Positions 31,190 through 49,195 of a stretch of 64,000 nt of DNA are shown here, in pieces. The first letter of the stretch is position 1, and each line of letters starts with the position of its first letter. Origin of the DNA: Paraphysomonas bandaiensis (lineage: Eukaryota > Protista > Chrysophyceae); the NCBI GenBank assembly GCA_965644295.1, contig CBFFRP010000241.1:1-64000 (forward strand), read 5' to 3'. The notes beneath the pieces are model-generated. The model saw only the letters and a list, made by a program, of their open reading frames with translations. It made no database searches and was not told the origin of the DNA. A program made the translations under genes and the position numbers.

Positions 31190-34100
31190 ATGGCTGACGA
31201 CGCTAGAGACAATAATCCAGCCAGTCGTGCTGAACTTATTGCTAAAATGGAACTATATTTAAGTCATAGGAATGCATTATTATCCATGTGGCAAACACAA
31301 GGCTTTCAAGGGACTGCATTTGATCAAACTAACAGTGTGGAGAGTATATCTGATATGGATATCGTTCGCAGAGGATATCCGCAGATATATGATCCAAATT
31401 TTAGGCAACGTGGTCTTAATGGTGATGTAGTATCTAATCTTCGGCAACTCTATGAGTGTGCTTCCACAGTAAAGTCGACATTTGATAATGCATTGACGCG
31501 TATTGCCAAAGACGCGGGACTGAATACAACAAGCTGGGATGGTTTGTCTGAGCAGCCCCCGGGGACAGGTCTCATCTTATGTGCCCTCAAAATGGCCGAT
31601 CGTGCTACGGATAAAATTCGTGAAAAGTATTTGAAAATTGAACCAGGACCCCCGGAGTCTTGGCTGTATGATGTCGTGCGGGCGTGCTTTGTCTGTGAAT
31701 CCGAAGAGCAGATATGCGCGATATGTGATAGCATTCAGAATTTTCATAGTTTTGAAGTTGTTCGTATTAAGAATTACTTTACATCTCCTCATACTTCTGG
31801 GTACCGAGATGTTCAACTTACTGTCCGCATGATGGTGAAGAACAAACAGGGTCATCTCATGTATTTTATATGTGAAGTAACGGTCACTCATCGCAATATG
31901 CAGCAGTATGAAGTAAGCAAGAAGACTAGGGAAGTAAGGGAATATTTTCGAAGTCTTTTTTCTGGACCCCAGAGCAAACAAGAGATTATAGTTGGAATCA
32001 TGGAAAAGTGCGTAAAAGAGGTGTCTACAGCTCTCGCAAATTGTAAAAGTGATGATGACCCGGAGAGAGTTGTGGGCCAAGTAATTACAGATTTTGCTGA
32101 AGAAGAATGGTCGCAGGAGGTAGGAGAAGATGACGATGAGGTTTTAGAGGGATGGGTTGATATGCTCAAATTCCTATCCGACTATGAATCTGCGGAGAAG
32201 ATTCACAGAAAACTATTGAAACTTCTAGTGCTGAAGCACGGAGAGGTCGGTGAATTATTCCATTGTTATCATATCGCATTGTATTGACATGAATTTGGGA
32301 TTAGGATGATGTGGAGGTGGCAGAAGCTCTGGATACTCTTGCAGTGCTTCTTAGACGCCAGGCCAAATATCCACAAAGTATTGCTCTCTATGAGAAGAGT
32401 ATATACGTCCGCACAAGGTTAGTCACACACGAATGCCATGCAGCTTCTGCACTTTGATAGAGTATTTGTTTATTTATTTATGTGTATATAGATTGTATGG
32501 AGAAAAGCATCCGTTCGTGGCAAGTACACTTCATGCGATGGCAGGGGTCATGTTTGAACAACGCAAGTTCGCTATGGCGCTCCCTCTTCACGAACAGGTC
32601 AGTCACAAAGTGTATGAAGTTCGTATATAGAGCCATATCAATTTTGTATACTACGATTACTATGTTGAGAGAATTGCACTGGTGTTTTTGCTTACTCAAC
32701 TCCTGACAGGTGTTGCTAATACGACGTCAAGTGCATGGGAATAGTCACCCAGATGTGGCCTCATCACTGAATAATCTGGCGAGTATAATGGAAGCTCAGG
32801 GCAAGGTGGAAGAAGCAAAGGTGAATAGCTTTATTTGTATGCTTACGTATATGATACTCTGTCTCCAGGATTTTTACACCCAAGCAATTGATGTCTGGAG
32901 GGATGTGTACGGTGATCTTCACCCCTACGTAGCTACATGCATCAACAGTTTGGCGGTACTTTTAGATGCATCAATGCAGCATGCCGAAGCGAAACCATAC
33001 TTTGAACAGTCTTTGGCTATTCGCGTGTCGATATATGGGGAGTTTCATTCCACAGTTGCAGCGTCACTAAACAATTTGGCATTGTGTCTAAAAAAGCTTG
33101 GTGAGACCATGGTCACTTCTATGCACATGTACTTCCTTTTTCTGTATTAATTTCGGCTTGGCTCTATACACAGCAACAGATATAGATATGTAATTGTATT
33201 GCTATGTAGGTGAATATGATGAAGCTGAACCACTTTATGAGAGATCTTTGGCTATCCGAAAACAGCAGTTTGGTGAACGCCATCCGGCAGTCGCCACAAC
33301 TTTGAACAATCTGGGTTTGCTCCTGAAGAAGCAGAAGAAATATGAACAAGCTAGACCATGTTATATACAGGCATTAAGCATCCGTCGGGAGGTGTATGGA
33401 AACAACCATGCCGATGTTGCAGCTTCGTTGAATAATCTCGCCTTACTGTTTGATGCCATGGGACAAAGGAATGAGGCACTCAAATTTCATGAAGAAGCTC
33501 TTGAGATACGATGTAGAGTGTTTGGTGGAGACCACAAACTTGTCGCTGAAACATATAATAACTTAGGTATGCAACGCAGATATATTGTACGCCCGTTGTA
33601 CTTACTGTGTTTATTGCTGGCAGGTCTACTGCTGAAGAAAATGGGAAATACATCACGAGCAAGGAGCATGTTTGAAATGGCTCTTCGCATCCGTCTCCTA
33701 TATGGTGAGGACCACCCTGATGTTCGTGCAACACAAGCGTGTATTGCTTCCTTGGCTGAGGCTGAAGAGACCATCACTAATTCATTGTCTCCTCAAACCG
33801 AACGAGCCGGCTCAACAGATATGGCCGTACATCTGCGAGTATATGGTCGTGAGCAAACAACTCTTGCTCACAGTCTCCGGGATATTGCGCAAAAACTTGG
33901 TGAGAATGGGTTCATCGAACAATCTCGACCCATGTTGGAGCAGTCTCTAGCACTGCTTAAAATTGCATTGAATGAAAACGATGAAGAGATCGCTATAGCT
34001 TCTACTTATTTAGCTGAAGCGTATAGATGTGTAGGTAAAATCTCCCTAGCGTTGAAGCTGTACCAAGATGCAACAAAGATCCTTCGTGTGGTGTATGGTA

Positions 34101-37100
34101 AATGTCATACAGCGGTGATAAAGAGTTTGGTGGAGGAATCTGCCCTTCTTGCGAAACAAGGCAATTTTGATGCCGCTAAAGGTATATTACATGAGTGTCT
34201 CGCTCTAACTCAACAACTCCATGGCGAGGAGCATGAGGAGGTGGCGGCCGTACTTAGTGCACTGGCCTGCGTGTGTAAAAGTGACGGTGACTATTCTCAC
34301 GCTAAGCATATTCATGAAAAAGCACTCAGCATGCGCATTAAGCTGTCTGGGGAGAACCACCCATTAGTAGCTCTGTCTTTAAGCGAAATTGGGGCCCTTA
34401 TGCAAGGCATGGGGAACTACGAAGATGCGATAGCGTTGCACCAGCAGGCACTGAGTATGCGCGTCGAAGCGTACGGAGGAAATATGCACCGTGATGTGGC
34501 TCTTTCACATCGGGACTTGGGGCTCGTATATAAGGAAGCAGGCATGTTTGAGGATGCGAAAGATGAGTTTGAGACGGCTGCAAGAATATTTACTCAAGTA
34601 GGAGGGGACCGAGATCCAGTGCTTGCTGCAACGTTGAACGATCTTGCAACTGTTGTTGTTGTGCCTGGTGGGGTTGGGGACTTGGATGCAGCTATTCCTA
34701 AGTTCGAGAAGGCATTAGATATTCGCATTAAGAGGTTGGTGCATACATGTATATTTTTTATTTGCTTCGGATGAGCGTGTGTTATGTATTGTTTGAACCA
34801 TATAAAACAATATGTACGACAGTCTAAGAAATATGCAGGTATGGTAGAATCCATGCTGACACAGCGCAATCTATGCACGACCTCGCTTGTGTTCTTCGGT
34901 CGTACCCCTATGATAGAGTGCATGAGCGCTCTCTTGCTATATTGTTCCTGGAAGACGCATTGGCTGTACGAAACGAGCTGTACAGCGAGGAGAATGACCA
35001 TCCCGATGTTGTTCGCACACTCTCTGAACTCTGTACTGCCCTGGTTGAAGAGGAATTATGGGAAGAAGTTTTATCTCCTGCCCACCAGCTACTTGAAGTC
35101 CGTAAAAGGGAGTATCCAGATGAAGATAATGACGAACTCATTGATGCTTACAGCATGCTGTCTCTTGTGTGCATGCGAAATTCTGACCTGAAAGAATCGA
35201 AAGATCATGCGACAAAAGCTCTTGATATATGCAAACGAATGTATGGAGAAAATAATGAACGTACAGCTACTTCGTATACTCTTCTCGCAGAGGTAAGAGA
35301 GGCTGAAGGAAAGTACAACAAGGCTCGTGCGCTACATGAGCTGGCTCTTAAGGTGCGGAACTCATTATATGGAGGGATTCACAACCTTGTTGCGGAATCG
35401 TTGGAGAGTATTGGACATATCCGTGTCCGTTCTGAGAAACACGAGAAGGCCCGCGAGATGTTTACTCAAGCACTTAATATTCGTCGCAAATTGACTAACG
35501 ACAATCCTGACATCTTCATAGCATACACTCTGAGTGATATCTTCTTAACACTGGTAGCACAGGATAGGTGTGAAGAGGCCAAGCCTATTGCTATTGAGGC
35601 ACTTCGACTTAGACAAACAGTATGTGCTAACAACGAACTGCTAATTGCAGAGAGTATGGTTCAGCTCTCTGCTATTCACACACAGCTGCTGGAGCACAAT
35701 GAGGCGAGACCACTCCTTGATGAAGGTTGGCATAGTGTTCGTCTGGCCACTGTCTAGTGACTGTTGTATGTACGCAGCTTTAAAAATTCGACTTCAGATT
35801 TTGGGACCAGTATCTCCGCAGGCGGCAGAGATGTATCATCTCTTGGGACGAAACCTGCAGGAACTTGGCCTCATAGAGGAGGCTAGAGGTCTGTACATTG
35901 TATGTTTTGTTTTTTTCTGACAGGATTTTGTAGATGCTTTGCTAAAGGCCTTAAATATACATATGAAGATAAGTAATGAGGATGATTCGGAAGAAAGTGC
36001 TGATACTTATCTGGAATTAGCCATGCTTTTTCATAGTGTGTCTGACTACGATGAGGCAATATTCTACTTCGAACAAGCTTTGGAAATGCGAATTCGTATG
36101 GAGGGGTTAGAGAGCGAAAGCGTGGCTAGTTGCTTGTTGAAAATGGCATTTACGTACCGTAAGATGGGGGAGCTGGAAGACTCCAGAAGGAGATATGAAC
36201 AAGCTATTGCAATTTTGACTAATATGCATGGTTCTGCTCATCTCGATGTTGCTACAGCTTTGGCTAGTTTGTCGTCACTGGCGTTTTATGAAATGAATTA
36301 CGAGGAGGCACTATTACTGAGTAAGCAAGTGCTCTTGATTAGGAAGAAGTTGCTGGGGCACTATCACATTGAATACATAAACACTCTGGCAAATCAGGCC
36401 ACCATTCTGGAGAAATTAGGGCGTGTGAAGGACGCCCTCGACAATATGAACAAGGTCTATCGTTGGAGAAAAGTAAATCTTGATCACAGTGATATCGGCT
36501 ACATTCAATGTCTTGTGAGCATGGCCAACTTGAAGCGCAAGGTGGGAAGCTTAGAGGACGCACAATCATTCAACTCGCTGGCGATAGACGCTTTGACTAC
36601 TTTGAAGGGTCCCACGGATCTCGATGTGATGGATAGACATGCCTTCAGTGCAGATGTATTAAAGGTGTTAGGCCAGTACAATGAAGCTGAGCGGATTCTG
36701 AGAAAAGTTGTATATCAGTTTACAGCCACTAGTGGCACGAATGACCCCGAAACAGCTCAACATATGTATTCCCTAGCCACTCTCCTCAAGAAGATTGGCA
36801 AGTATGAAGAGGCGAGTAGGTTGTACAAGCTGGCTTTTCAAGCGCAAACAGAAGCATTCGGCCGTGATTCGCCTGTTGTTGCTTCTACTTTAAATAACAT
36901 GGGTGTAATGTACGTTGATCAAGACCGGTTTGATGATGCCGAACAGCTATTTGTGGAAGCTTTGCAAATCCGTCGCTCAGCTTTTGGGGAGAATCATCCT
37001 GATGTGGCTGCTTCATTGAATAACTTAGCAGCATTATATGATGTTCGTGGCAACTACGGGAAAGCGAAGACGATGTATGAAGACTCTTTGAAGATACGCT

Positions 37101-38455
37101 GTATTGTGTTTGGAAAGAATCACCCTGCCGTTGCTCAAAGTCTCAATAACCTGGCGAATCTTTATTGCTGTATTGGCCAGTTCCAGGATGCAGAAGTTAT
37201 GTATGCTGAAGTTCTCCGGATTATCATTGATACATTTGGAGAATCTCATCCTGATGTAGCTGCTACTAATAATAACCTTGCAGGTATGAGTACAAGCATG
37301 CTGTGTTTGATGAATACTTGTGTTGGTTCGTTTGTCTTATTTGCTTTGCCAGGGTGTTTTGAGAACAAGGAAGATTACGATAAGGCGCTACCATTGTATG
37401 AGAAGAGTCTCGCCATTAGACAGGCTGTATTTGGCCCCTCTCATCCGACTGTGGCCCAGTCATTGAACAATTTAGCTGGAATAAAATTCCGTAAGGGAGA
37501 TTATCAGGGGGCTCTATCTCTGTACGAAAGGAGTATGGAAATCAAAATCAATTTGTACGGATCTGAGAACGCCGATGTGGCAGAGAGTCTGAATAATATT
37601 GCTGTACTTCATATGGCTGCTGGAAAGTTGACCAGTGCAGTTCATTCCCAGGAACAAGCTGTACAGCTGCTGGAAAAGCTCTTGGGGCCCCATCATCCGA
37701 ACACCATCAATGTCAAGGGCAATTTAGGAATTAGTTACAAACGTATGGGTGTACAAGGTCTGGGTGATAAACTTGTTAACGAGGCACTTACTTATCTTTC
37801 CACCAACAAATACCCGCTGGCTCACCCTTGGGTGAAAAAATTTACAGCAGAAGTTGCAGGTTTTTCGCCTACTGCATCTCCCAACGTATCCCGAGATGAT
37901 TATAGCGAGTCCTCCAGTGTACTTTCCACAGACACAGGGAGTCGCTTCAACAACTCGGGGAAGTATGTTAACCCAGATAAAACGAAACGACCGACGCTTA
38001 AAATTGCCGTGTCAACGCTACATAAGATGGAATCGGATATGACCTATGAAGGGGCTCGTACACCGGACAACGTTTCCGTCGATTCGGAAGATGTGGACCT
38101 TGACGACGTGGCCGTTGATTTGCCGGATGATAGTCTTCGCGTTGGAGACAGAGATATAGAGAGTGGAAGTGTAGGGTCCGGTGGGCAACGGCGGGGTCGG
38201 TCGTATAGAGACCCGATTGGAGGATCCTTATCAGCCCAGCGACGGTTGGAGGCTCTTGCCGCCACGTCCTCTTCTCGTCAAGTGAATGTGAATATTGTCG
38301 ACAAAACTAGGAGAAAGTCTTTAGCAAATAGCGAGTCTCCTAAGGCGGGTATCCGACCTAGGCGGCAACGACCGAAATTATCCGACTCTGGTGGGGAAAG
38401 TGATTATTCAGGAAGTGGGGGCGGTTTTACTTCAGGGGGATCTGGGAAAGCGTAA
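31190..38455 (+). CDS. Very large TPR protein (kinesin-light-chain/TPR_12-type repeats) with N-terminal RelA/SpoT-like nucleotidyltransferase domain; multi-exon
   Basis: Many 42-aa repeats (HPDVAASLNNLA..Y..A..LYE.SL.IR); exon 1 LK..R..DK, LYDVVRA, EVVRIKNYF..P..SGYRDVQL, FICEV; ORFs linked by short GT-AG introns. Confidence 0.85.
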
Positions 38456-40342: not shown

Positions 40343-41891
40343 AAAGGAATCAAAAAGGAAAACTTTCTTGTGGATTTATTGACTTAATGGGAGGGTGGAA
40401 AGACTTTCGATGTAAATGATTGTCACCAATACGGAAATGTTTCTGAGGTTGATTTGAGTGTATTGAATTGAGCTCGTCATCTGATGCCTCCATAATGGCT
40501 TTAAATAGAGAATTCCTGTATATTTTTTGTTCAAAAATGTCTCTAATATTGAGATAATAATTATGTGTATTCCAGCTGTAGTTGTACTTCAGTTATATAG
40601 AGGATATTTGCTTCAATTTATATCCGAAAAATAAGATGCGGACTGCGGATACGATGACAACTTCTCTTCTTGTTGTTGTTTGGGCAGTCAGCATCTTATT
40701 TTTTCGGGAATAAATTGAATCAAATATTCTCTATATTACTGAACTACAACTACGGCTGGAATACAGATGATTGTTGTATCAATATAGGAGACATCTTAGA
40801 ACAAAAATATACAAAGGATACCGATATACATGTACATGTATGCATGAGCAGCAGTTTGTGCATATCGATTTTATGGATTTGTTCTTGTTCATTGTTTATT
40901 TCATTGAAAAGTCATCGTTTTTTCATTTAAAAGTCACTTTTTTTCACTTTTCACTGAAAAAACGATGATTTTTCAATAAAATAAACTGTACATCAATAAA
41001 TTTCCGAAAAAACGACTAAAAACTTGGAGTTTTTGAGTGATCATAATTTTAATAGCGTTTTTTATGTTTTTTATGGACCAAAACTACAGGATTTTGTGTA
41101 TGGAATAATGCCACAGGGGTTTAGGAGTAAAACCTTACATATTATAGAAACCCTACATTTCAGGATTCTAAAATCCTCGAATGTCCTAAAACTCCATTTT
41201 TGGGGTATTTAAGAGTTTATTGCTCACACTGAAACCCTTTTAGGGTTAAATAACACATACAGCTGCAACACACGAACCCATGGTGCGAAACGAGGAGAAA
41301 CAACTGCCGATCTCGTCAAGTTAGCACGACTTCTACAGCTGTTATACAATAGCAACAAGAGAAGTACGCACAGTAACTTCTGCTTAGATTCATTCCTGTC
41401 GATTAAGCTACAGTTGGGTAGCATATGTCTACTTTATATAGCTTCAGCTCTTTAAATAGTTTATGCATATGTTTATGCATATAGGATAGTTTGTACGAGG
41501 GGTCCGGGGGGGTCTCCTAAAAAAACATAAAATCTGCATAAATTCATGAGTTTATGCAGCCTATTTTATGCAGATTTATGTGTTTGTGCAATTTAGGTAG
41601 TCACCCAGTATATAGGATATTTTTAACAGGGATTTTAAGGCCTAAATAACCCATATTTAAGATCTTTTAAACATGGATTTTTAGGCCTAAATAACCCATA
41701 TTTGGGATTTATTGATGGTCCGCTATGCTCCCATTTCCAGGAAACTTTCTCACCATGGTCTCTGTGTATTCCACGAGTAGTCAGTGTGGTCTCATGCATG
41801 GCATCACATACATACGTAAGATTTCATATCAAACTCATTCTTGTCATCATAATCTACATACTCACATAACACTGAAGTGATACGAACTATA

Positions 41892-43466
41892 ATGGAAACT
41901 GAATCAACTGAATTAATTGATGCACGTACTGCATTACATGAAGCTATTCTACAAGCTAAAGTAGCAGAAGAAGTTTCACGTTTAAAACAAATTGAAAAAT
42001 GGAAGAAAGGAATGAAAACAAAACATCTTCCAACAACTCAATTAGAGAATGCATTAAAAGAAGCAAGTCAAAATACAAATACAAACATTATTGAAGATGT
42101 AACAATTTCAGTATTTATTGATTTATTTTTAGAAGATATTCAAGAAACGAGAGAAAATGTCATAAAAAAACAAAAAATTGTTGATAATTTAATTGAAAAA
42201 GCATCAGAAGAGAAATTGCTAAATATTCAGAAAGTTATTCCTGATTATGTTCCTTTATTACAGACTGCAACTCCTTCAGAACAATTTCAACAATGTGTTC
42301 AATTATTGGAGTCTCTTGTGATAAGTCAGCGGAAAACTGAAGAGCGTGTGGAGTCACTTATGATAAGTCAGCGGAAAACTGAAGAGCGTGTGGAGTCACT
42401 TATGATAAGTCAGCGGAAAACTGAAGAGCGTGTAGCAGAGCTTTGGGCAACACAGTTTTCATTAAGTCGTGCAAGAGATGCGGGGTTCACTTGTTCGCAG
42501 GCTAGGTCTGCGGGATATACTTGTTCGCAGGCTAAGTCTGCGGGATATACTTGTTCGCAGGCTATGTCTGCTGGATTTACTTCGGTGGAATTGTCAAATG
42601 TCATGAGGCTTCGCTGTATCCATACTCTGTCGGGTCATACTGGTCATGTCAGCTGTGTGAGTGTGCTTCCAGATGGTCGTATTGTGAGTGGTTCTGGTGA
42701 CGGTACTCTTCGCATTTGGGATGCATCCAGTGGACAGTGCATCCTTACTCTGTCGGGTCATACTAGTCCTGTCAACTGTGTGAGTGTGCTTCCAGATGGT
42801 CGTATTGTGAGTGGTTCTGGTGACGGTACTCTTCGCATTTGGGATGCATCCAGTGGACAGTGTATCAATACTCTGTCGGGTCATACTAATTATGTCAGCT
42901 GTGTGAGTGTGCTTCCAGATGGTCGTATTGTGAGTGGTTCTAATGACTATACTCTTCGCATTTGGGATGCATCCAGTGGACGGTGTATCAATACTCTGTC
43001 GGGTCATACTAATGTTGTCAACTGTGTGAGTGTGCTTCCAGATGGTCGTATTGTGAGTGGTTCTAGTGACAGTACTCTTCGCATTTGGGATGCATCCAGT
43101 GGACGGTGTATCAATACTCTGTCGGTTTATACTAGTCCTGTCAAGTGTGTGAGTGTGCTTCCAGATGGTCGTATTGTGAGTGGTTATGCTGACAATACTC
43201 TTTGCATTTGGGATGCATCCAGTAGACAGTGTATCAATACTCTGTCGGGTCATACTAGTCCTGTCAAGTGTGTGAGTGTGCTTCCAGATGGTCGTATTGT
43301 GAGTGGTTCTAATGACTGTACTCTTCGCATTTGGGATGCATCCAGTGGACGGTGTATCTATGCTCTGTATATTTATGTCGCGTGTGTGAGTGTGCTTCCA
43401 GATGGTCGTATTGTGAGTGGTTCTAATGACTATACTCTTCGCATTGTGGAGGAAGAGTGGATTTAG
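41892..43466 (+). CDS. Coiled-coil + short-repeat + 7x WD40 protein with highly conserved internal repeats
   Basis: Intronless ORF; 3x ESLMISQRKTEERV, 4x A(R/K/M)xAG(Y/F)TCSQ-like, seven 123-bp/41-aa GH..WD units. Confidence 0.9.
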   Translation: METESTELIDARTALHEAILQAKVAEEVSRLKQIEKWKKGMKTKHLPTTQLENALKEASQNTNTNIIEDVTISVFIDLFLEDIQETRENVIKKQKIVDNLIEKASEEKLLNIQKVIPDYVPLLQTATPSEQFQQCVQLLESLVISQRKTEERVESLMISQRKTEERVESLMISQRKTEERVAELWATQFSLSRARDAGFTCSQARSAGYTCSQAKSAGYTCSQAMSAGFTSVELSNVMRLRCIHTLSGHTGHVSCVSVLPDGRIVSGSGDGTLRIWDASSGQCILTLSGHTSPVNCVSVLPDGRIVSGSGDGTLRIWDASSGQCINTLSGHTNYVSCVSVLPDGRIVSGSNDYTLRIWDASSGRCINTLSGHTNVVNCVSVLPDGRIVSGSSDSTLRIWDASSGRCINTLSVYTSPVKCVSVLPDGRIVSGYADNTLCIWDASSRQCINTLSGHTSPVKCVSVLPDGRIVSGSNDCTLRIWDASSGRCIYALYIYVACVSVLPDGRIVSGSNDYTLRIVEEEWI

Positions 43467-44031
43467 CATTTTGATTGTATTCAGTCGATTGTGGTCATTC
43501 GGAATTGTTTCCGTACTACACTTTCCTTTGACCCGGTTAATCAACTATCAGTCAGTTATTCCTGATATTTTTATTATTTATATTTTTGCTTTTACGCACT
43601 GTCGCATTATTTAACATTGAAAAGCCAGCACGTCGTGCATTGGAAACATGGATCGGACAACTCTACGATCCTGAATCTCTGTTGTCATGTGCAATCAAAT
43701 CAATCAAAGAATGAGAGTGCACGTGAGTACGAGTTGTTGTAGGCATAGATCACAAGCAATTGATTGATTGATAGATTGATTTACTGTTCGCCACGCATTA
43801 AATTAGGTTAGTAATGTGGTGGTATTTTCTACTCACGATACGAGGTATACGGTTAAAACTATGTTACAGGTAGTCTTATCAGTGCCTAGTTTCTTCCGCT
43901 CATGTACGCATTTATGATCCTCTCCATTACAGCATCTGGAAGCTGATATACTTCTTCCCATCTCAGATCCCAGGTATCGTGCCTATTGAGTTATACCAGA
44001 CTATTCGTCAAGCCTCGTATCAAAAAAGAAT

Positions 44032-44430
44032 ATGAGATATCGAGAATTGGCGATAAACCTCCAAATGCATCCAATCGATGACTACAAAACATTAATCCGC
44101 AGACTGTTAGAAGCTCGACTGTTGGAATGCTCTTATCGAACAACGAGGACACAAAAACCGACAGTATTCAGCTTGCAGCTTCAAAACCCCTGTTTTTCCC
44201 GGAACAAAGTAAATTTCAAGCGCGAAAAGGGGACATCTTTCAGAAACCGCTCCAACAAACCGAAACATGATAAGAGAGCTGATAAAGACATTAAGTGTTT
44301 CCAATGCGAAGGAAAGGGTTACATTGCATCGGAATGCAAATTCTCATGGAAAAAGATTCAGCGGAAAACGACAATTCAGGAAGGCCAAATATCAGACATC
44401 ACCACCTCATATACAGATTACCGACAATGA
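44032..44430 (+). pseudogene. Retrotransposon gag-like remnant with degenerate zinc knuckle
   Basis: CFQCEGKGYIASEC (H>Y of CX2CX4HX4C); duplicated at ~48555-49153. Confidence 0.6.
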
Positions 44431-44591
44431 TGAAGGTCAGTTCGAACAACAGTATACCGAATTTGAAAACAGAGGAGTCTCATGTAGTTAAAAGTATGAA
44501 AAAAAATCACATCATTCATGTCGTTTCACTCCTTCCAGTCAATATTATTAAAAACTAGTTTCAATATTCGCAGTGTTGCCTTATTGGAAAA

Positions 44592-45171
44592 TGTTGAGTT
44601 CTGCAATATGATGTGATATATATTGTGCAATTGAAGTGAGTTAACAATGTGCAATAGGTAAAGTCAACTCACAGGTGTAACGGGTGATTATAGTTACAAA
44701 GGAATTAAATTCAGTTACTGATGTGTGACTATACAAGATATAGAGCTGACTGATGAACATATGATAAACAGATGTTGCTATAAGAACAGATGTTTCAACA
44801 TATGTTACACGAATATATAGTGAAGTGTTCAGAATAATAATCATAATTTCTTACTTGAAAGTGCATTGTGTTCAACAGCAAGGTTACGGTTTTACGCGTA
44901 GATCAAAGTTAACTTCAGTGAAATGTCCATTGTTAACATGGTAGCGAGTGGTAGCACTGAAGAGACGAAGGAGGACAACAAGGTGCTGAAGTTCGACAAG
45001 TATCAGGCGGAGGCGTCTGCTCAAAAAAAAAGGATTCATCTGATAAACAAAAATCGGAACCATCTGGGGTTAGAGCCGAAACCTGCTGGAGGAGGCAGAG
45101 CACGAGAATTATGGCATGAGCGAAATGACACGTGTGTTGCAACGATTTGGGAGGCTTGTGAACATGACGCT
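44592..45171 (+). mobile_element. 3'-truncated Copia-like LTR retrotransposon: 286-bp LTR, PBS-like site, gag start
   Basis: TGTTGA(44592)...TCAACA(44877), then GCAAGGTTACGG and an ORF from 44923; absent at the paralogous site (ttattggaaaa|agtc at 49153). Confidence 0.65.
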
Positions 45172-45559
45172 GGTGGGGAAAGTGATTATTCAGGAAGTGG
45201 GGGCGGTTTTACTTCAGGGGGATCTGGGAAAGCGTAATGTTCTGTGATGTATTAACGAAAGTAGTTGTAAAATATGTATTGCTCTCTTTTTCATATGATA
45301 CTATGTAATGAGATGATTTAGTTATGATTTCAAGTAATGAATATGATGTGTTTGGTACTGTTTTTTATTCAAATTATTTCCCCATTCTTCAACTTTTGAC
45401 ACATTGACACTTAGAATTAAGTACCTGAACTTCAACACAGCACAGTCTCTGTGGCTAAACCAAGAAATAGGAGTGCGAAAAACACATATATAGGAAATTC
45501 AAGGTTATAAAAACATTATGGACCTTGGTACAGGATGCCTTGGTTGTTCTCTGGAGGCT

Positions 45560-46560
45560 TCTGAAGAGCGTGTGGAGTCACTTATGATAAGTCAGCGGAA
45601 AACTGAAGAGCGTGTGGAGTCACTTATGATAAGTCAGCGGAAAACTGAAGAGCGTGTAGCAGAGCTTTGGGCAACACAGTTTTCATTAAGTCGTGCGAAA
45701 GATGCGGGGTTCACTTGTTCGCAGGCTAGGTCTGCGGGATATACTTGTTCGCAGGCTAGGTCTGCGGGATATACTTGTTCGCAGGCTAGGTCTGCTGGAT
45801 TTACTTCGGAGGAATTGTCAAATGTATCCATACTCTGTCGGGTCATACTAATTATGTCACCTGTGTGAGTGTGCTTCCAGATGGTCGTATTGTGAGTGGT
45901 TCTTGGGACAACACTCTTCGCATTTGGGATGCATCCAGTGGACAGAGTATCCTTACTGTGCGGGGTCATACTAGTTATGTCAACTGTGTGAGTGTGCTTC
46001 CAGATGGTCGTATTGTGAGTGGTTCTAATGACAGTACTCTTCGCACTTGGGATGCATCCAGTGGACAGTGTATCAATGCTCTGTCGGGTCATACTAGTTA
46101 TGTCAACTGTGTGAGTGTGCTTCCAGATGGTCGTATTGTGAGTGGTTCTAATGACTATACTCTTCGCATTTGGGATGCATCCAGTGGACGGTGTATCAAT
46201 GCTCTGTCGGGTCATACTAATTATGTCAGCTGTGTGAGTGTGCTTCCAGATGGTCGTATTGTGAGTGGTTCTGCTGACTATACTCTTCGCATTTGGGATG
46301 CATCCAGTGGACAGAGTATCCTTACTCTGTCGGGTCATACTAATGTTGTCAACTGTGTGAGTGTGCTTCCAGATGGTCGTATTGTGAGTGGTTCTAATGA
46401 CTATACTCTTCGCACTTGGGATGCATCCAGTGGACAGTGTATCAATGCTCTGTCGGGTCATACTGGTTATGTCAGCTTTGTGAGTGTGCTTCCAGATGGT
46501 CGTATTGTGAGTGATTCTGGTGACAATACTCTTCGCATTGTGGAGGAAGAGTGGATTTAG
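45560..46560 (+). pseudogene. 5'-truncated, frameshifted paralog of the WD40 gene (6 repeats)
   Basis: Lacks the first ~150 codons; 16-bp deletion (catgaggcttcgctgt) before repeat 1; 3' flank matches 43467-43818. Confidence 0.85.
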
Positions 46561-48521: not shown

Positions 48522-48992
48522 TTGCAGCAAACGCATGCATGTGTATGTATTATTATACCTGACTATTCGTCAAGCCTCGTATCAAAAAAGAATATGAGAT
48601 ATCAAGAATTGGCGATAAACCTCCAAATGCATCCAATCGATGACTCCATAACATTAATCCGCAGACTGTTAGAAGCTCGTCTGTTGGAATGCTCTTATCG
48701 AACAACGAGGACACAAAAACCGACAGTATTCAGCTTGCAGCTTCAAAACCCCTGTTTTTCCCGGAACAAAGTAAATTTCAAGCGCGAAAAGGGGACATCT
48801 TTCAGAAACCGCTCCAACAAACCAAAACATGATAAGAGAGCTGATAAAGACATTAAGTGTTTCCAATGCGATGGAAAGGGTCATATTGCATCGGAATGCA
48901 AATTCTCATGGAAAAAGATTCAGCGGAAAACGACAATTCAGGAAGGCCAAATATCAGACATCACCACCTCATATACAGAATACCGACAATGA
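48522..48992 (+). pseudogene. Second gag-like remnant with intact CCHC knuckle
   Basis: CFQCDGKGHIASEC; near-identical to 43992-44591. Confidence 0.65.
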
Positions 48993-49195
48993 TGAAGATC
49001 AGTTCGAACAACAGTATACCGAAATTGAAAACAGAGGAGTCTCATGTAGTTAAAAGTATGAAAAAAATTCACATCATTCATGTCGTTTCACTCCTTCCAG
49101 TCAATATTATTAAAAACTAGTTTCAATATTCGCAGTGTTGCCTTATTGGAAAAAGTCTTCTAGTACACATCTAACGACGAATAGTGACGTAGCCC

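Follow-up and report, generated by a model that had tools for sequence, protein, structure and literature searches.

The WD40 propellers closest in pattern to the one described here come from fungi and bacteria. In the HNWD proteins of Podospora anserina, the WD40 codons under selection (7, 9, 25 and 27) lie as pairs around the purified codons 8 and 26 (PMC1805685). Hu et al. (2017) catalogued highly repetitive WD40 proteins in bacteria (50% of 305) and fungi (36%), listed protists as a source, and found their hotspot sites to be diverse (PMC5587647). Repeats of high internal conservation are also found outside the NOD-like receptors (NLRs) in fungi (PMC4986451). Here we analyze a WD40 gene in a 64,000-nt stretch of Paraphysomonas bandaiensis DNA (contig CBFFRP010000241.1, positions 1 to 64,000; hereafter the window). 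Its product joins an orphan N-terminal domain, a probable coiled coil and decapeptide repeats to a C-terminal array of seven near-identical 123-bp WD40 units. Changes among the units are concentrated in six codons, most of which are predicted to lie on the top face of the propeller, a pattern that probably reflects diversifying selection for recognition of a variable partner.

Variation among the WD40 units

Tandem Repeats Finder (TRF) called the array at 42615-43445, with a period of 123 bp, 6.8 copies and 91% matches. It consists of six full 41-codon units and a seventh (43353-43466) that carries a 9-bp (3-codon) deletion and ends in the tail VEEEWI before the stop codon. We compared the units codon by codon, taking the seven units of this gene (array 1, A1u1 to A1u7) together with the six of a broken second copy (array 2, A2u1 to A2u6; n = 13). 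Codons 3, 10, 11, 13, 28 and 30 are hypervariable. The translations agree with the variable positions named in an initial annotation of this DNA, GHT-[GH/SP/NY/NV]-V-[S/N/K/A] and GS-[G/N/S/A]-D-[G/Y/S/N/C]; codon 3, which alternates between H, L, N and Y, is an addition to them. Codons 41 (Q/R), 1 (C/S) and 4 (T/A) are dimorphic. That annotation had also described the seven units as almost identical in DNA with about one synonymous change, and the only purely synonymous difference within array 1 is indeed a TGT/TGC change in unit 2. In unit 5 (43107-43229), five more changes affect conserved positions of the scaffold (GH>VY, S>Y, R>C and G>R).

Across the 13 units, the minimum number of changes was 40 non-synonymous (93.2 sites) against 2 synonymous (29.8 sites), giving an omega-like ratio of 6.4 (binomial P = 9e-4), and the pairwise Nei-Gojobori comparison gave pN/pS = 7.8 for the whole unit. 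Both ratios exceed 1 over all genomic units, as expected from the diversifying selection that had initially been proposed. At the six hot codons, pN was 0.44 against an overall pS of 0.015 (about 29-fold), and the comparison of non-synonymous changes at these codons with all synonymous changes gave P = 2e-10. The changes are clustered, 25 of the 42 minimum changes falling in 6 of the 41 codons (P = 3e-5).

The scaffolds are near-identical across units, often without a single difference in 84 nt, whereas 4-12 of the 18 hot nucleotides vary. A1u1, A1u3, A1u4, A1u6 and A2u1 have the same 84-nt scaffold, yet 6-12 of their 18 hot nucleotides differ. A2u2 and A2u5 are duplicates of each other, because three private scaffold markers are common to both, and still differ at five hot nucleotides. 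Mean amino acid identity between units was 0.83. The five-residue hot combination is unique in each of the 12 full units, and the half-unit combinations NY-S and NV-N are present in both arrays.

Position of the variable codons on the predicted propeller

An AlphaFold2 model of the propeller was built with an alignment of 49 propellers. The model is closed, with 28 strands forming seven four-stranded blades (predicted local distance difference test, pLDDT, 94.5; predicted template modelling score, pTM, 0.91), and pLDDT stays above 90 through units 5-7. Foldseek gave TM scores of 0.91-0.94 to Thermomonospora PkwA (5yzv), a designed 7-blade protein and WDR5 (0.93 to both 5yzv and WDR5), and the best sequence match in the PDB was 2YMU from Nostoc punctiforme (E = 2.8e-129). 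Both 2YMU and 5yzv, the latter being the best fold match, are examples of the highly repetitive WD40 proteins of Hu et al. Residues of the DHSW tetrad are retained in most blades.

According to DSSP, the unit runs through strand D (codons 1-5), the D-A loop (6-11), strand A (12-17), the A-B loop (18-22), strand B (23-27), the B-C turn (28-30), strand C (31-35) and the C-D loop (36-41). The top face of a WD40 propeller is made up of the D-A and B-C loops. The D-A loop ends with codons 10 and 11. Codon 13 comes second in strand A, and the conserved Asp of the B-C turn has codons 28 and 30 on either side; codon 3 belongs to outer strand D, and codons 41 and 1 are at the bottom. Codons 11, 13 and 28 correspond to the R1-2, R1 and D-1 hotspots of Wu et al. 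(PMC3419727). By strand topology, the hot codons are thus predicted to occupy the R1-2, R1, D-1 and D+1 hotspot positions on the top face of this confident model, where the initial annotation had put them.

Comparison with fungal and bacterial WD40 arrays

The array resembles Podospora HNWD, HET-D and HET-E in several respects. Its hypervariable pairs, [x]V[x] and [x]D[x], surround a conserved residue on the interaction face, as Podospora codons 7/9 and 25/27 do; the protist pairs are one residue closer together because the unit has 41 rather than 42 amino acids. In both systems the WD40 units are conserved in DNA (0.83 amino acid identity and 91% nucleotide matches in the protist, about 85% amino acid identity in HNWD), dN/dS exceeds 1 and nearly every unit is a unique combination (PMC1805685, PMC2873952), and a pseudogene copy keeps intact repeats. 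The HNWD-like pattern of uniform scaffolds and differing hot nucleotides, with hot pairs around Val and Asp, was therefore correctly recognized at the outset.

The differences are also clear. The protist protein has neither a HET nor a NACHT domain. Podospora has a 10-gene family with 69 units, whereas the protist has one gene and one broken copy, with just two arrays of 7 and 6 units; inter-locus exchange and repeat-number polymorphism among isolates are demonstrated for the Podospora family. Two more positions vary in the protist (codons 3 and 10), and the host is a marine protist rather than a fungus. The protein does not belong to the HNWD/NLR group, as it lacks an NTPase, a HET domain and a gene family; judged by its sequence, its propeller does behave like an HNWD/NLR sensor domain.

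With an internal identity of 0.83 against a threshold of 0.7, diversity at the predicted hotspots and a retained tetrad, the array also matches the highly repetitive WD40s of Hu et al. The general phenomenon is not new: such repeats with diverse hotspots, protists included, are already published (PMC5587647). That catalogue is descriptive, without dN/dS and without an analyzed protist example, and the orphan domain, coiled coil and decapeptide N-terminus are absent from the architectures it describes. Our literature search turned up neither a protist case that had been analyzed nor an account of this architecture.

Of all WD arrays, those most similar to this one (50-61% identity) are C-terminal sensor arrays of bacterial NTPases. 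One such protein, P0028 (L050 6001-8562), has NB-ARC and APAF1_C domains and seven 41-aa units (GHDDWVRAVSVLPDGRIVSGSDDRTLKVWDAETGECSRTLK) with 88% internal identity, in a bacterial gene neighborhood; further examples are a KAP NTPase (P0069) and P-loop NACHT-like proteins (L131, L137 and L142). These bacterial signal transduction ATPases with numerous domains (STAND) and KAP NTPases have a 41-aa unit with a VSVLPDGRIVSGS core, variable at the same positions as in the protist, but they possess a P-loop NTPase switch and lie in a bacterial gene context. We considered a recent transfer of the WD array from bacteria and found it unsupported: the best prokaryotic match (GTDB) was 58% identical, the best metagenomic match (Joint Genome Institute, JGI) 55%, and P0028 61%. 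We make no claim of gene transfer, because the identity is too low and the units are too consensus-like. When JGI metagenome contigs were scanned for further units by exact 35-mers, there was no match in a set from which near-identical records may be missing.

Proposed diversifying selection and the relaxed-constraint alternative

We favor, with reasonable though not full confidence, the reading that the product of the gene is a soluble binding protein, probably an oligomer, in which diversifying selection would act on the top face of homogenized or young blades for recognition of a variable partner. The uniform scaffold fits recent amplification, gene conversion or both.

The main rival is a young propeller in which one blade was amplified to seven and has drifted under relaxed constraint, the loops being free and the scaffold held by the fold, with no role in conflict or recognition. 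Highly repetitive WD40s have been read as young duplications (PMC5587647), and young repeats have been described as generally under positive or strongly relaxed selection (PMC5120217). However, neutral loops should diverge at about the synonymous rate, and the hot codons depart from it some 29-fold with the P value given above; in addition, all 12 full units carry different combinations, and the gene is intact and expressed. We consider drift alone an unlikely explanation, although it is one to be taken seriously.

Several observations weigh against the recognition reading, and three of them speak for drift: the scaffold substitutions are mostly non-synonymous too; units 5 and 7 carry damage at conserved positions, in keeping with somewhat relaxed constraint; and the locus is solitary, one gene and one broken neighbor with no expanded repertoire. 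Between the two arrays the scaffolds have diverged by 3.4%, about as much as their flanks (2-4%), so recent duplication explains their likeness and ongoing exchange is unneeded; exchange between the copies is possible but not required. With 13 units the sample is small, and tree-based dN/dS tests are unreliable in the presence of recombination. Top-face placement follows from strand topology and published hotspot rules, not from solvent exposure. The array interior is unassembled in low-coverage DNA runs, and short-read contigs collapse or miss the array, leaving the number and order of units in strains unreadable. Finally, the case for a recognition role is built from sequence, a model and analogy.

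Gene structure and expression

The coordinates of the features are collected in Table 1. The WD40 array sits within an open reading frame (ORF) of 41877-43466, in which translation starts with the ATG of position 41892 (METESTELI...). A JGI record includes a protein of 349 aa (P0002) that begins at the same position, which also aligns with the starts of two more distant homologues (P0121 and P0192), and contig L040, which is transcript-like, runs colinear with the window from position 41816 on. As the start agrees across P0002, L040 and the more distant homologues, we take the coding sequence to be 524 aa without a coding intron. An upstream exon encoding an NTPase was ruled out, as an in-frame stop precedes 41877 and the start is kept in homologues.

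Table 1. Features of the WD40 gene and of its second copy (window coordinates)
Feature	Position	Strand	Details
Complete coding sequence, N-domain/coiled-coil/decapeptide/WD40 protein	41892..43466	+	524 aa, no intron, 1575-bp open frame
Orphan N-terminal helical domain, ~145 aa	41892..42326	+	Motifs ED..IS.F[VI]D.FL.D, IP.Y, QC..L.E
Three 42-bp (14-aa) repeats ESLMISQRKTEERV in a long predicted helix, probable coiled coil	42307..42433	+	TRF
Decapeptide repeats AG[FY]TCSQA.S, Pfam PF25296	42432..42599	+	TRF, Pfam
Seven 123-bp WD40 units, predicted closed 7-bladed propeller	42615..43466	+	C-terminal half of gene
63-nt GT..AG intron in 3' untranslated region (UTR)	43805..43867	+	Spliced out in polyA-RNA contig (run X7)
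High-copy dispersed repeat between paralogues	44590..45172	.	Contig depth and breaks
Truncated paralogue, probable pseudogene	45518..46560	+	N-domain absent; 2.3 14-aa repeats and decapeptide repeats

The only Pfam families in the 524-aa protein are Decapeptide and WD40 (PF00400, E = 9e-71). No NACHT or NB-ARC domain was matched across its whole length, and neither HET nor any other known death or effector family matched the N-terminal 145 aa. TRF called the 14-aa repeats with a period of 42, 3.0 copies and 97% matches, and AlphaFold predicted residues 130-196, spanning this region, as one long helix (pLDDT up to 89). For the decapeptide repeats, TRF called three 30-bp repeats (period 30) at 42489-42582; PF25296 scored 48.9 bits in copy 1 and 54.9 bits in copy 2 (cut-off 45 bits), a match that the genome scan also recovered, and AlphaFold modeled them as short helices with low confidence. 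The initial annotation had seen a coiled coil and 14-aa/10-aa repeats in place of a NACHT domain, and the Pfam scan, the predicted helix and PF25296 agree with this. PF25296 otherwise matches DotG/IcmE-like proteins that also bear TrbI and pentapeptide domains. The protein resembles Legionellales DotG/IcmE in the ten-residue repeat AG[FY][ST]xxEAxS, above the Pfam cut-off, and differs from it in having only 4-5 repeats, no TrbI domain and a eukaryotic context.

Among the runs that contain the stretch are four polyA marine metatranscriptomes. Two contigs from run X7, one of 272 nt (42404-42675) and one of 433 nt (43402-43804), match with 0 mismatches each. The latter joins 43804 to 43868, skipping 43805-43867 with its GT..AG ends; since this 3' UTR intron is spliced out, the contigs represent eukaryotic mRNA. 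The polyA runs, the spliced intron and the genome content support the protist host assumed initially. At least 7 loci of the genome match the silicon-transporter family, cadherin repeats occur at four loci in intron-less open frames of 3,000-4,600 aa, and a search of the genome for the light-harvesting complex family LHC (PF00504) gave no match. Together, these features point to a non-photosynthetic, silicon-handling, intron-poor marine protist.

The state of the gene bears on whether it is a formerly functional WD40 gene that is losing constraint like its neighbor, in early pseudogenization. Unit 5 lacks GH and three further conserved residues, three codons are deleted from unit 7, and the neighboring copy is already frameshifted and truncated. 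Yet the 1575-bp frame is open here and in the P0002 allele, units 5-7 are still modeled at high pLDDT, and polyA RNA with a spliced UTR matches the gene exactly. Decay would also be expected to scatter changes with dN/dS near 1, and the observed changes cluster in six codons. We therefore judge decay improbable.

Other strains and the integrity of the assembled array

A contig from a related organism (organism C), covering 43383-43845, shows 11 differences over 463 nt, of which 5 affect codons 28 and 30 in the final unit (AAT>TGG at codon 28 and TAT>AAA at codon 30). This comparison is reliable because the unit is anchored by unique flank. TGG at codon 28 recurs in unit 1 of copy 2, a sequence-level hint of a shared variant pool.

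P0002/L040 is another strain's allele of the same gene, with an open frame and WD40 units, of which there are only 3. We did not take this three-unit array for a real repeat-number variant, since it looks like a short-read collapse: the identical scaffold exceeds typical k-mers. The same tendency of near-identical 123-bp repeats to collapse in short-read assemblies could mean that the repeats in the window are mis-ordered or chimeric and the repertoire unreal. The variants, however, are codon-specific and in frame, the array edges are matched without mismatch by independent RNA contigs, and X7 contigs at 90% identity or more reach all array bins. Chimeric joins would shuffle hot-codon combinations, not generate variants. 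Such an artefact is very improbable.

The second copy and its surroundings

Copy 2 is located 3 kb downstream of the gene and begins inside the 14-aa repeats. A 16-bp deletion breaks its frame just ahead of the WD40 array, whose six units (45823-46560) have their own hot-codon repertoire, and no ATG opening the WD frame of copy 2 was found. Its flanks are 96-98% identical to those of copy 1. Copy 2 is probably a pseudogene or a silent copy.

The repeat at 44590-45172 has a summed contig depth of about 2e5 in run X9, and in all DNA runs many contigs break off at its edges (44590-92 and 45172). It probably represents a fragment of a transposable element that inserted between the WD40 copies. Two gag-like ORFs lie at 44032-44430 and 48522-48992, one of them with a CCHC zinc knuckle. 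L040 (1644-2251) matches 48548-49153 at 97.5%, and thus the gag-like element is repeated in the window.

A further alternative is targeted mutagenesis, in which something like a diversity-generating retroelement (DGR) writes the hot codons with the adjacent copy as template or donor cassette. The hot codons are mostly NNT, with AAT and AAC the commonest states, a second, silent array lies 3 kb away, and the gag-like ORFs are nearby. However, the variable nucleotide columns 31, 39, 84 and 90 are free of A in all units, which is at odds with adenine-specific mutagenesis; no reverse transcriptase was found in Pfam scans of nine neighboring ORFs, which cover part of the window; and no template copy differs from the array at A positions only. 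DGRs are not known in eukaryotes. We rejected DGR adenine mutagenesis on the A-free columns and the lack of a reverse transcriptase among these nine ORFs, and consider DGR-like writing in general extremely improbable.

The neighboring gene upstream, at 31190-38455 (+), encodes a weakly matched RelA_SpoT-like domain (E = 4e-5, which misses the Pfam cut-off) and, after it, very long TPR_12/TPR_10 arrays. In fungal NLRs, RelA_SpoT is known as an N-terminal effector (Dyrka 2014). Between the RelA_SpoT-like part and the TPR arrays, there is no ORF of NTPase size. The final ~21 residues of this gene (GGESDYSGSGGGFTSGGSGKA, ending at the stop codon; 38390-38455) reappear upstream of copy 2 (44923-45237). 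The duplication therefore took in the 3' end of the TPR gene, and ~3.5 kb was lost later.

The N-terminal domain family and genomic relatives

An exhaustive HMMER scan of 1.84 billion cluster representatives with the N-domain found only P0002, P0192 and P0193, and a word search added P0121. All four have the N-domain, a helical linker and decapeptide repeats. The three distant relatives (P0121, P0192 and P0193) are 30-39% identical and conserve the three motifs listed in Table 1. WD40 repeats occur in 0 of these 3; P0121 certainly lacks them, as its stop codon is well inside the contig. Since the distant relatives have no WD40, the array is a lineage-specific addition to a small orphan family. 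A single-sequence fold prediction of the N-terminus was all-helical and poor (pLDDT 53), and a search of the ESM Atlas gave no lead for this domain.

DNA and protein searches of the 62.5-Mb genome found no other copy of the N-domain or of the 123-bp unit outside this locus. TRF detected no 123-bp arrays at the 27 other WD40 loci of the genome, and the next WD40 genes are at most 41% identical, with ordinary diverged blades. A large paralogous family was therefore rejected, and the receptor family envisaged in the initial annotation is reduced to one gene and one broken neighbor.

Other PF25296-like AGF[TS]xxEL repeats occur in the genome at G000:C400:102610-102798, C431:161942-162106, C217:94861-95013 and C74:126377-128321, where they adjoin armadillo-like repeats (C74) or are part of a cysteine-rich membrane protein (C217). 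In this organism, the decapeptide motif seems to serve as a linker module that can be reused. We also noticed two ~95% identical coiled-coil and WD40 ORFs of 575-577 aa on different contigs, L016 (G000:C425) and L017 (G000:C113). These could be haplotigs or stem from a recent duplication, and the choice bears on copy numbers in the assembly.

Proposed function and implications

If the propeller is under diversifying selection for recognition, the 123-bp units would recombine by unequal crossing-over and gene conversion, both inside the array and with the broken copy, and this would keep the scaffold uniform and reshuffle the blades. Diversifying selection would then retain new residues on the ligand face, as in Podospora HNWD and the WD40 sensors of bacterial STAND NTPases. 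Most likely, the propeller would recognize a variable partner, such as a virus, a parasite, prey or conspecific non-self, and the N-domain would give the output. A bolder proposal is a recognition receptor without an NTPase in a heterotrophic marine protist, in which a hypervariable WD40 face tethered by the coiled coil senses viruses, parasites or conspecific non-self, the silent array serves as a donor cassette for conversion, in analogy to pseudogene-templated diversification, and the N-domain is a new effector or signaling module. In this complete form we regard it as quite unlikely.

Because the general phenomenon is already published, the locus is valuable as a clear-cut new case and as a test system, not as a new principle. 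The narrowly distributed N-terminal domain family, with four known sequences, may represent an unrecognized output module. The strategy of homogenization combined with hotspot diversification, best documented in fungal NLRs and bacterial STAND proteins, would also operate in a free-living marine protist without an NTPase switch, and the gene offers a compact, expressed, single-locus case for asking what such propellers recognize outside fungi.

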